Positions 53,530 through 60,455 of a DNA stretch of 64,000 bases are shown one piece after another. The DNA lies in assembly GCA_002269645.1 (NCBI GenBank), contig NIVC01000275.1, forward strand, positions 248,001-312,000, given 5' to 3'. A program made the translations under genes and the position numbers. The stretch comes from Macrostomum lignano. Its lineage: Eukaryota. Below the pieces are notes generated by a model. It was not told the origin of the DNA and did not search any database. It was given only the letters and a program-made list of their open reading frames with translations. Positions within the stretch are counted from its first letter, which is position 1; the number at the start of each line of letters is the position of its first letter.

Positions 53530-55999
53530 ATGCTTGAGTTCAGCGAAGTTTGCATTTTACTTTTAGCACTGACAGCAGCTCCATCCAAGTGTTCAGGTAA
53601 GACCGAGTGTGTTCACAATTTTGTCTTGTTCGCCAAGTTCCTTATAATCCAGAACCTCTGCTTTACCTCATCTTTTATTCCCTACGTGCTCAGCTGAAAG
53701 CTCAGATTTTGGCTGGATTTGCGAGGCCACCAAGGAGTTTTTTGTAGCCTCACAGCTCGATGACCTGCAGCTCAACAGCAGCGACAGCTCAGCCAGGGTG
53801 TGCCTTCACAGGACTGATTATCCCGACTCGGTGCTTCTTTACGAGTCTACTGACAAGGTGAGTTAAGCAAACTCGTAAGAAACTCGTTTTGGGTGTAGAG
53901 ACAGCCAGACAGGGTGGCATCAATATCATCGCGATCTAGTAGTCGCTTGGGGTCTGTAATCTATCATCCCAGTCAGGGGCGTCGCCACCGGGGGGGACAG
54001 GGGTTACATGTCCCCCCTCCCAGTAAAAGCCACCCCCATCTTGTGACCCGATGTGAAAATCAATAATTTTGTTTCAGGGCGCCAAAATGAGTGCCTGTCT
54101 TTGGCGGCAAAATGAGTGCCTGTGGCGCAAAAATGAGTGCCTGTCTTTGGCGGCAAAATGAGTGCCTGTCTTTGGCGCCAAAATGAGTGCCTGAGACACC
54201 AAAATGAGTGCCTGTGGCGCAAAAAAATGAGTGCCTGTGGCGCCAAAAGGAGTGCATGTGTCGCCAAAGTAAGTGCCTGTGGCGCCAAAATGAGTGCCTG
54301 CCTGTGACGCCAAAATGAGTGCCTGTCTGTGGCGCCAAAATGAGTGCCTGCCTGTGACGCCAAAATGAGTGCCTGTCTGTGGCGCCAAAATGAGTGCCTG
54401 TGGCGCCAAAATGAGTTCCTGTGGCGCCAAAATGAGTGTCTGTGGCGCCAAAATGAGTGCCTGTCTGTGGCGCAAAATGAGTGCCTGTCTTTGGCGCCAA
54501 AGTGAGTGCCTGTGGCGCCAAAAGGAGTACCTGTGGCGCCAAAATGAGTGCCTGTGGCGCAAAATGAGTGCCTGTCTGTGGCGCAAAATGAGTGCCTGTC
54601 TGTGGCGCAAAATGAGTGCCTGTCTGTGGCGCCAAAATTAGCGCTGAAAACACCGATTCGCAAAAGAATGAATTTGTAGGAATTTAGTCATGTACATGTA
54701 AAATTCTTGGCTTTGTCCCCCCCACCACCATAAAATCCTTGGCGACGCCCCTGATCCCAGTTGGTTTTGTCCAGAGCTAAGCGTCTGGTTGCATTCTGAC
54801 CGCTGTACATCCGCGGTGCCAGTGTAGGCCTGTGCTCATTTGTGCTCAGGAAAAGCTGAATTGACACGAGAATTTGAGGCTTGGTCTGAGTGTGTAAGCG
54901 GCCTTGGGAGTGGAGTCCCATTACTTTTGTACTAAGGATTATTTAACTGTGCATGCTTGATGTCTAAGTTGAATAAATGATTCATTTTCATCCTTTGCAG
55001 ACTGAAGCGCAGAACGAGAGCCGCATTCTGGTATTTGAGCTGCCGGATCACTTGAAAAGCGGCTGTTCCAGCGACTTTTTCTGGCAGGTGAGCTGAACAG
55101 CGGAACGCGAAACCAGAGTCACCGGATCGGGCACCTGGGGGCACTTTTTAATCCTTCGTTTGCAGCGAAATCCACTAATAAAACAATAAACAAAAACTGA
55201 ACTCTCCCCGACAGATTGAAAGACAACCGATTGATTCGACAATGGGACTGTGCGACAATTCGATACCGAATAAATGCTTTATAAAAGGTGAGTTTGATAT
55301 TTTTTCTATCTATCTATCTATCTGTCTATCTATCTGTCTATCTATCTATCTATCTATCTATCTATCTATCTTTCTATCTATCTATCTATCTGTCTATTTA
55401 TCTATCTATCTATCTATCTATCTATCTATCTATCTATCTATCTATCTATCTATCTATCTATCTATCTATCTATCTATCTATCTATCTATCTATCTATCTA
55501 TCTATCTATCTATCTATCTATCTATCTATCTATCTATCTATCTATCTATCTATCTATCTATCTATCTATCTATCTATCTATCTATCTATCTATCTACCCC
55601 ACAGTCGGGTGGCACAGCAACTGCCCAGCACCCATGTACTCAGGCAGCCAGCAGCTCAGCTGCTACAACCCTCCATCCGGATTTATCGAACTGTGCCAGC
55701 GGCGGTCGGAGCTCGGCAGCAATCGGAACTGGATGTCCTCAAATTCCAGCGCCGTCGCCGCAGACGAGGACTCTACGGGATTGCAGGTGTTCTCAGCCGT
55801 CGTGGCCTTTCAATTGTGGCTGCCGCTGCTGGTCGCCCTGGTCTGCGGCCTCCGCTACTGGCGCGCCAGAACCGTCCAGAGACGGCAGCGCAGCGGCCCC
55901 GCAGTTCCGATCGTCAATCCGCCGCCGGTCGAGCCCTGGGAGGCTGAGCGGGCGCTGCAGATGGACCCGGACACCTGCGAGAGGGTGGCCGTGGAGTGA
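53530..55999 (+). CDS. Unrecognised type I membrane protein, paralog X; exons 53530-53596, 53694-53857, 55001-55087, 55215-55287, 55605-55999 (261 aa)
   Basis: Signal peptide MLEFSEVCILLLALTA. GT..AG introns have phases 1,0,0,1. There are 8 ectodomain Cys and a TM segment FSAVVAFQLWLPLLVALVCGL. Exon-by-exon similarity to paralog Y. Confidence 0.75.
53974..54753. mobile_element. Non-autonomous hAT element (780 bp) carrying an internal minisatellite (GGCGCCAAAATGAGTGCCTGT-like, ~54075-54640)
   Basis: Perfect 14-bp TIR CAGGGGCGTCGCCA / TGGCGACGCCCCTG; 8-bp TSD ATCCCAGT at 53966-53973 and 54754-54761. Confidence 0.92.
55308..55596. repeat. (TATC)n microsatellite filling intron 4 of paralog X
   Basis: Directly visible. 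Confidence 0.97.
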
Positions 56000-56257
56000 A
56001 AGACTGAAAAAAAGTTTTTCAACTTAAAGACGTTAAAATTTTTTCTTTTTTGTAGATCAATTATTGCTGTCACGGTACTCTGATGCCCTCAATCAAATAT
56101 ATGAGTTACTTCGAATCTGTTGATTACATTTTGATTCTGTATCAAAAGAAGAGAAGAAAGAAAGACCCTTTGTCTGTCTCTCTATTCTGTTTCTAGTCTG
56201 TCTACTTGCCTCCCGCTTAGTGTCTGCTTATCAGTGTCCCTACATGTATTGAGTGTG

Positions 56258-60000: not shown

Positions 60001-60455
60001 AAGCCAGTTGCGCTTCCCCAGTCGGCCGGAGCCGGCAGTGCCCGCACTACCCAATCAGCAGCGAGCCGGTGAGGTGCAGCTCCGTGCCGGACCAGTTCGA
60101 GTTCCTGCCCGCCGGCTGTCGGGATGCCGCCGCGACCTCGACGGCGAAGTCGCCTCCCGCCGAGCTCCCAACCGGTGCAACAGTCGGGATCGGCACGGCG
60201 CTGTTCATCGCAGTCTTGCTGTCGGCCGGGGCGGCCCTGATCTGGGCGATCAAATCCTGCGGGAGCTCATCAGCTGAGCAGCCAGGACACGCCCGAGTGG
60301 TGTACTCAGCGTTCGCCATACTGGACAATCCTCAGCAGGTGCGGCAGTTTTTGAGACACCGTCTGGCGGCCAGTGGCGACCATTTTAACTATCGCCGCGA
60401 TCCGCGACTCTTGATGGCCAACCCTGACACCGGGGAGCTCGTTGACAATTCTTAG
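57096..60455 (+). CDS. Unrecognised type I membrane protein, paralog Y; exons 57096-57174, 58298-58467, 59070-59159, 59253-59334, 60022-60455 (284 aa)
   Basis: Leu-rich signal peptide. GT..AG introns have phases 1,0,0,1 (the exon 2 donor GTCTGC is weak). There are 8 ectodomain Cys and a TM segment VGIGTALFIAVLLSAGAALIWAI. The C-terminal LLMANPDTGELV matches LQMDPDTCERV in paralog X. Confidence 0.78.
57305..58150. repeat. ~20-21-bp array GGGGAATTGCTGTGGCTC(AT/AC/CTT) in intron 1 of paralog Y
   Basis: Directly visible. Confidence 0.95.
58579..58800 (+). mobile_element. tRNA-derived SINE with A/B boxes
   Basis: A-box-like TAGTGGTTAGAG and B box GGTTCGATTCC, followed by TGTGTCCTTGAGC...TTCACCCAGCTGTAAAATGGGTGCC. 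A second copy lies at 19854-20090. Confidence 0.82.
59349..59990. repeat. 16-bp array CCCCATCCCCGAAATA filling intron 4 of paralog Y
   Basis: Directly visible. Confidence 0.95.

Follow-up and report, generated by a model that had tools for sequence, protein, structure and literature searches.

What are the two small five-exon genes that lie in tandem on one contig of the flatworm Macrostomum lignano, and what might their products do? We analysed a window of 64,000 nucleotides (nt) from contig NIVC01000275.1 (assembly GCA_002269645.1, Mlig_3_7; positions 248,001 to 312,000 of the forward strand); positions given below are window coordinates unless another contig is named. The two genes, here called gene A and gene B, are listed with all other features in Table 1. 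We consider it probable, with some reserve, that A and B go back to an old tandem duplication, and that these transcript-supported genes encode small type I membrane glycoproteins whose ectodomains have diverged and whose tail motifs dock a common partner. According to this reading, exon 1 would supply a cleavable signal peptide and exons 2–5 an extracellular domain of about 140–150 amino acids (aa), beta-rich by weak prediction, with eight conserved Cys residues that presumably form four disulfides and with one conserved N-glycosylation sequon. A low-complexity Ser/Thr/Ala stalk, a single transmembrane (TM) helix and a cytoplasmic tail would follow in that order. Through the divergence of their ectodomains the two proteins would have come to bind different partners outside the cell; inside it, both would be docked by their tail motifs to one common cytosolic partner, which could be a signalling scaffold or an adaptor for sorting or trafficking.

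Gene models, duplication and genomic copies

The two gene models, assembled by script, share their organization in detail. All eight introns are bounded by GT...AG, the intron phases run 1,0,0,1 in both genes, the exon lengths are parallel (A/B: 67/79, 164/170, 87/90, 73/82 and 395/434 nt), and an in-frame stop lies upstream of the ATG in each. The product of gene A is 100% identical over all 261 aa to PAA86542.1, 'hypothetical protein BOX15_Mlig016674g2', and the GenBank record calls genes at 53530–55999 (261 aa) and 57096–60455 (284 aa), so that gene B also agrees in start, stop and length. Because RNA-seq and transcript assemblies were the sole basis of the GenBank annotation of Mlig_3_7 (StringTie, TACO, the TBONE pipeline and TransDecoder; PMC5730564), all eight junctions, and with them both models, are transcript-supported through that annotation. 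A first-pass annotation of the window had proposed two five-exon genes with these intron phases, and its models proved exact, down to the GenBank coordinates. It had also described them as invisible in the track of open reading frames (ORFs) and as unrecognised; they are indeed missing from the prokaryote-style ORF list, but they are present in the public annotation, where they already stand as hypothetical proteins. Genes A and B are thus not undiscovered; what is new here is only that they are paralogs, that their introns are arranged alike and that their tails have two motifs in common.

Three public records bear on gene A (PAA86542.1, PAA86455.1 and PAA65185.1; BOX15_Mlig016674g2, g1 and g3; UniProt A0A1I8JML6 and A0A267EUG3). 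The g2 entry is gene A itself, the g1 and g3 copies differ from it at two residues, and all BOX15_Mlig016674 records are hypothetical proteins without a name, domain or function. A literature search for the Mlig016674 identifiers found no mention of them, and none occurred in the supplements of the M. lignano papers checked for expression. Their absence from the neoblast and germline lists of PMC5816591 is weak evidence, as the list text was possibly incomplete. A TATA-like box precedes either gene, and a poly(A) signal follows each of them (consensus matches). The separate TATA-like boxes, together with the AATAAA between the genes, suggest that A and B may be two separate transcription units.

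Several lines of evidence indicate that A and B are true tandem duplicates, that is, paralogs. BLASTP aligned the two proteins with E=4e-8 (28% identity across 141 aa, 38.9 bits), and the ectodomains alone gave a Smith–Waterman score of 101 against 30.1±5.1 in shuffled sequences, a score reached by 0 of 2000 shuffles (z ~14). In a MAFFT alignment all four introns occupy the same columns, in the same phase, in both genes: just after the signal peptide, after K77/K83, after Q106/K113 and within codon 131/141 (A/B). The diverged exon peptide blocks on which the first-pass annotation had based its pairing are all present, and its view of the pair as diverged duplicates is upheld by the BLASTP match, the shuffle test and the shared intron columns. 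Synonymous sites are saturated between A and B (proportion of synonymous differences, pS, 0.60–0.65), as is the ratio of non-synonymous to synonymous substitution rates (dN/dS), and different codons are used at 36 of the 64 residues identical between them. Saturation and codon differences together argue that the duplication is old and that the common residues do not derive from recent gene conversion. Kept despite this saturation are the eight ectodomain Cys, one sequon and the tail motifs. No third paralog was found by tblastn and motif scans within the window plus 2 kb beyond; a 'VGWDADCP' match at 15879–15902 was set aside as chance (E=3.1), lying inside the C-terminal part of a gene resembling that of angiotensin-converting enzyme (ACE).

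The DV1 genome of M. lignano is partly duplicated (PMC5730564), and the A–B tandem is found again at NIVC01001676.1 and NIVC01000280.1, giving three genomic copies in all. The exons at these two loci are 97–100% identical to those of the window, with every splice site intact. Each long intron of A and B, the intergenic spacer and the 3′ flank hold a different mini- or microsatellite. Array lengths vary among the three copies, so that gene A spans 2470, 3043 and 2489 base pairs. About 15% of the M. lignano assembly consists of tandem repeats (PMC5730564), and satellite-filled introns are typical of this genome.

Predicted membrane topology and the search for a family

Both proteins read as type I single-pass membrane glycoproteins. 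Each has a predicted cleavage site with small residues at positions −1 and −3, judged by eye (A, KCSA/E; B, AKA/S, the slash marking the cut). In the genome the span of the gene A signal peptide includes intron 1, being made up of exon 1 and the first 2 nt of exon 2. The eight ectodomain Cys residues pair one to one (A 32, 59, 99, 119, 127, 137, 150 and 161; B 37, 62, 106, 128, 137, 147, 159 and 173). A has a ninth Cys, C21, ahead of the ectodomain, where the predicted signal peptide has its c-region. The first-pass annotation had given each protein a signal peptide, exactly eight ectodomain Cys and one TM helix; the alignment of all eight Cys and the single helix stand, whereas the exact count in A depends on cleavage after residue 23. 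The Cys residues outside the ectodomain (A 8, 21, 211 and 255; B 220) are not conserved between the two proteins. Sequons of the form N-x-S/T occur at N50, N82 and N177 in A and at N51 and N55 in B, with one conserved column (A N50/B N55).

Apart from the signal peptide, the Kyte–Doolittle profile of each protein has a single hydrophobic peak, and the TM segment of A is followed by the strongly basic RYWRARTVQRRQR, as the positive-inside rule would have it. A single-sequence AlphaFold model of A had a mean predicted local distance difference test (pLDDT) score of 43.6 and stayed below 50 throughout before residue 187. A helix at residues 189–226 was the only region with blocks of pLDDT >80, and a few weak beta-strands lay within residues 55–108. 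Of the marks of this topology class, each protein shows a single predicted TM helix within the chain and, N-terminal to that helix, sequons and an even-numbered set of conserved Cys.

Searches for a family were negative throughout their range. Pfam hmmscan returned 0 families for A or B at E<=10, extracellular and Cys-rich domains such as TNFR, Ly6/uPAR, EGF, SRCR, sushi, WSC, Ig and CUB included, and against PDB sequences neither phmmer nor hmmsearch with an A+B profile gave a credible match, only noise (forkhead domains at E 0.3–0.5). Among 5.8 billion protein clusters, A matched only itself and near-identical copies, and B matched nothing, with or without its poly-Leu signal peptide. A phmmer search of 1.84 billion representatives with A recovered A itself and one spurious bacterial match, and did not recover its paralog B. 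The bacterial match, a repeat protein of 1474 aa (E=1.8e-4), was rejected as a homolog because the similarity is compositional, its repeat unit NWTTSDGSGxVATDEDQT matching the stalk NWMSSNSSAVAADEDST. A metagenome scan for homologs was also negative. At the database size searched, matches below about 45 bits are invisible; since A and B themselves score 38.9 bits, relatives as distant as the paralog would be missed, and 'orphan' here means having no close relative. The outcomes that the first-pass annotation had named beforehand as speaking against it were junctions absent from transcripts and a confident placement in a known family; what we found instead were transcript-supported junctions and no family in the Pfam, PDB or large protein searches, in which respect 'unrecognised' holds.

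Within the reach of these searches, the family does not extend beyond Macrostomum. The lack of a significant homolog outside the genus fits the Macrostomum-specific orphan class of PMC5816591, in which genes without a homolog in human, Schmidtea or Schistosoma amount to 35% of ORF-bearing M. lignano genes and 44.5% of all transcript clusters. This 'non-conserved' class of Grudniewska et al. 2018 (PMC5816591) is defined by absent BLAST hits only, whereas A and B are a paralog pair with a conserved architecture. With about 35% of ORF-bearing M. lignano genes being Macrostomum-specific, there is nothing unusual here about two small secretory-pathway proteins that form an orphan pair.

The ectodomain may, instead of being new, be a highly diverged form of a known extracellular fold, for example Ig-like, another beta-sandwich or a known disulfide-rich module; the pair would then be a rapidly evolving offshoot of a receptor or adhesion superfamily that already exists. 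Most orphan extracellular domains prove to be known folds once deep alignments are used for modelling. Single-sequence and two-sequence profile methods are blind at such divergence, as the failure of A to recover B among 1.84 billion proteins and the low pair score illustrate, and within residues 55–108 the weak AlphaFold model has no other element than beta-strands. TNFR-, Ly6/uPAR- and SRCR-type receptors have the same layout as A and B, with a signal peptide, a disulfide-rich glycosylated ectodomain, a single TM helix and a short tail with linear motifs. However, A and B have no profile match to them and their tail motif is not among the adaptor motifs known from those receptors. Their Cys spacing (x26, x39, x19, x7, x9, x12, x10) is, by eye, unlike the textbook TNFR, Ly6/uPAR, EGF, SRCR, sushi and cystine-knot patterns, and Pfam gave no match and the PDB profile search nothing but noise. 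We hold the known-fold explanation to be a genuine possibility that falls somewhat short of an even chance. The boldest reading, that A and B are founding members of an undescribed Macrostomum- or flatworm-specific receptor family, with a new four-disulfide fold and a docking motif, [DN]-P-D-T-x-E-x-[VI], for one conserved intracellular partner, appears improbable to us. Assignment to a lineage-specific receptor, adhesion or recognition family, as the first-pass annotation had proposed, would be reasonable but purely conjectural.

Tail motifs, sequence change between copies and candidate roles

The cytoplasmic tails, 48 aa long in A and 67 aa in B, are colinear. Each runs from the TM helix through motif 1 (A-x-x-I-[VL]-(D)-N-P-x-x-V, about 17–20 residues past the helix), a spacer of 6 or 21 aa and motif 2 (R-x-L-x-M-(x)-[DN]-P-D-T-x-E-x-[VI]-x3-COOH) to three final residues, the remainder having diverged. 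The first-pass annotation had noticed the core of motif 2, (D/N)PDTxExV, which is indeed present; in both proteins only three residues separate its end from the stop. It had called the tails otherwise unrelated, and this must be revised, as motif 1 is common to both.

Comparison with known tail signals gave partial likenesses. The E-x-[VI] of motif 2 resembles a class III PDZ ligand (X-[DE]-X-Φ-COOH), but the element is not C-terminal: three residues follow (ERV-AVE-stop in A, ELV-DNS-stop in B), leaving no free carboxylate at Φ. As to acidic dileucine signals ([DE]xxxL[LI], DxxLL), the D-T-G-E-L-V of B is similar and fits [DE]xxxL[LIV] loosely, but A, with DTCERV, has R in place of the dileucine Leu, and we rejected such a signal as common to the pair. 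To our knowledge, the tail motif also fits neither of the TRAF-type patterns P-x-Q/E-E and P-x-E-x-x-Ar/Ac. The tails are short, without an enzymatic or known signalling domain, and their conserved motifs lie near the C-terminus, features that would suit not ligand-binding receptors but accessory, chaperone or trafficking membrane proteins (such as auxiliary channel or transporter subunits, or cargo of a specialised secretory organelle) in which the tail motifs are sorting signals only. B would offer two such signals, the loosely dileucine-type DTGELV and a YxxΦ-like YSAF; neither pattern is kept in A, whose only tail Tyr stands at the membrane border. We regard this role as rather unlikely.

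The three genomic copies show how the genes are changing. Copies of A differ by three synonymous and two non-synonymous substitutions, both of the latter in the tail (R226G and, inside motif 2, C255W), and both other copies (homeologs) accordingly read PDTWERV. Copies of B differ by four synonymous and five non-synonymous substitutions and a 6-nt insertion in the stalk, and motif 2 of the NIVC01001676.1 copy reads PDTGELI. Within the Cys-rich core (A 32–161, B 37–173) there are 0 amino-acid against 4 synonymous changes between copies, numbers too small to test. These data can be set against the idea that A and B, though transcribed, have no function, being lineage-specific ORFs or duplicates in decay. 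For such ORFs one would point to the lack of homologs outside M. lignano, to the frameshift in one of three B copies and to the proportion of substitutions that alter an amino acid (2 of 5 in A, 5 of 9 in B). However, the ORFs, the four intron positions, the eight Cys, the sequon and the tail motifs persist despite synonymous saturation, splice sites are intact at all three loci, and the Cys-rich core is free of amino-acid changes between copies; we consider absence of function very improbable.

Our preferred reading, of an old duplicate pair of type I membrane glycoproteins with docking tails, has several points weighing against it. Motif 2 taken alone is only modestly significant: its local score of 30 compares with 19.6±3.7 in shuffles, 91 of 5000 of which reach it (p≈0.02), which tempers the first-pass claim of a shared tail motif. 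Its variable positions differ even among near-identical copies (C/W, V/I), and it matches no linear motif that we could name by inspection. In databases as large as these, even the A–B pair score would go undetected. The signal peptides were judged by eye, and the n-region of A is acidic, which is atypical; in B the stretch after the TM helix has only one Lys (K218), a weak positive-inside signal that makes its orientation less certain. Translation, membrane localisation, glycosylation and disulfides are predicted from the sequence, and it is from there that we infer disulfide bonding, surface localisation, motif function and any receptor or adhesion role. Differences between copies (5 in A, 9 plus indels in B) are too few for a meaningful dN/dS. 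Finally, the B copy at NIVC01000280.1 lacks 1 nt of a G-run in the part of exon 5 that encodes the TM helix (NIVC01000280.1 16145–16583, corresponding to gene B codon 196, window ~60186–60188), which shifts the frame; its annotated product, of 214 aa, has neither TM helix nor tail. This copy may be real, and decaying or coding for a secreted form, or the shift may be a homopolymer error of the assembly.

Surroundings of the tandem and meaning for Macrostomum

Neighbouring genes and repeats are included in Table 1. Upstream of gene A lie two N-terminal exons of phytanoyl-CoA dioxygenase (PhyH) type that encode the same first ~130 residues, from which a local duplication of this neighbouring gene follows; the PhyH gene annotated upstream of gene A, with a 304-aa product, is also kept at the NIVC01000280.1 locus. 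Between the PhyH gene and gene A is a Ty3/gypsy-type long terminal repeat (LTR) retrotransposon, probably inactive, with its coding region split over several frames. A (GGT/ACC)n run of ~390 nt adjoins the C-terminal exon of the ACE-like gene and, in open frames, reads as an unbroken series of about 125 codons for Thr (or Val/Leu). Rfam and ARAGORN found no RNA genes within the window.

Table 1. Features of the analysed window (window coordinates), with the basis of each assignment
Feature	Position	Strand	Basis or remark
Gene A	53530..55999	+	5 exons; 261-aa product = PAA86542.1 (BOX15_Mlig016674g2)
Gene A exons	53530-53596, 53694-53857, 55001-55087, 55215-55287, 55605-55999	+	scripted assembly, 786 nt
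Gene A predicted signal peptide, residues 1-23, MLEFSEVCILLLALTAAPSKCSA	53530..53695	+	by eye: hydrophobic core, small residues at -1/-3
Gene A predicted TM helix, residues 192-213, then RYWRARTVQRRQR	55787..55852	+	hydropathy; AlphaFold helix
Gene A tail motif 1, AVPIVNPPPV, residues 230-239	55901..55930	+	alignment, pattern scan
Gene A tail motif 2, RALQMDPDTCERV, residues 246-258	55949..55987	+	alignment, pattern scan; 3 residues then stop
TATA-like box, gene A	53436..53441	+	~95 nt 5' of ATG, in-frame stop between; consensus match only
AATAAA	56722	+	3' of gene A stop; consensus match only
Gene B	57096..60455	+	5 exons; 284-aa product
Gene B exons	57096-57174, 58298-58467, 59070-59159, 59253-59334, 60022-60455	+	scripted assembly, 855 nt
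Gene B predicted signal peptide, residues 1-24	57096..57167	+	Kyte-Doolittle windows; poly-Leu core, then AKA/S
Gene B predicted TM helix, residues 195-217	60183..60251	+	hydropathy
Gene B tail motif 1, AFAILDNPQQV, residues 237-247	60309..60341	+	alignment, pattern scan
Gene B tail motif 2, RLLMANPDTGELV, residues 269-281	60405..60443	+	alignment, pattern scan; 3 residues then stop
TATAAA, gene B	56896..56901	+	~200 nt 5' of ATG; consensus match only
Possible tRNA-derived stretch (…GGTTAGAGCGTCGGACTC…GGTTCGATTCCC…), possibly a short interspersed element (SINE)	~58575-58660, gene B intron 2	+	by eye; no ARAGORN/Rfam call
Satellite array, 21-nt unit	54078-54638		
Satellite array, (TCTA)73	55305-55596		
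Satellite array, (TGTC)80	56256-56575		
Satellite array, 21-nt unit	57304-58069		
Satellite array, 16/32-nt unit	59348-59992		
Satellite array, 15-nt unit	60589-60800		
Two PhyH N-terminal exons	42284-42766, 44633-45436	-	
Ty3/gypsy-type LTR retrotransposon	45901-49834	+	gag-like ORF, reverse transcriptase/RNase H, integrase zinc-binding domain
ACE-like peptidase M2 gene exons	15738-19257	-	
Intron-less 345-aa ORF, match to rhodopsin-family/Srw-type seven-transmembrane receptor	10642-11679	+	Pfam E ~1e-13 to 5e-14
Intact 675-aa ORF, putatively transposon-derived	28856-30883	-	by eye; no Pfam match, no exact gene-collection record

At present, genes A and B are one documented pair of paralogs among the very many hypothetical proteins that are specific to Macrostomum. 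Should they prove to be a true receptor or recognition family, they would offer a small and tractable entry into lineage-specific cell-surface biology, in an animal for which transgenesis and RNA interference are available, and the conserved tail motif would provide a handle on the cytosolic partner.

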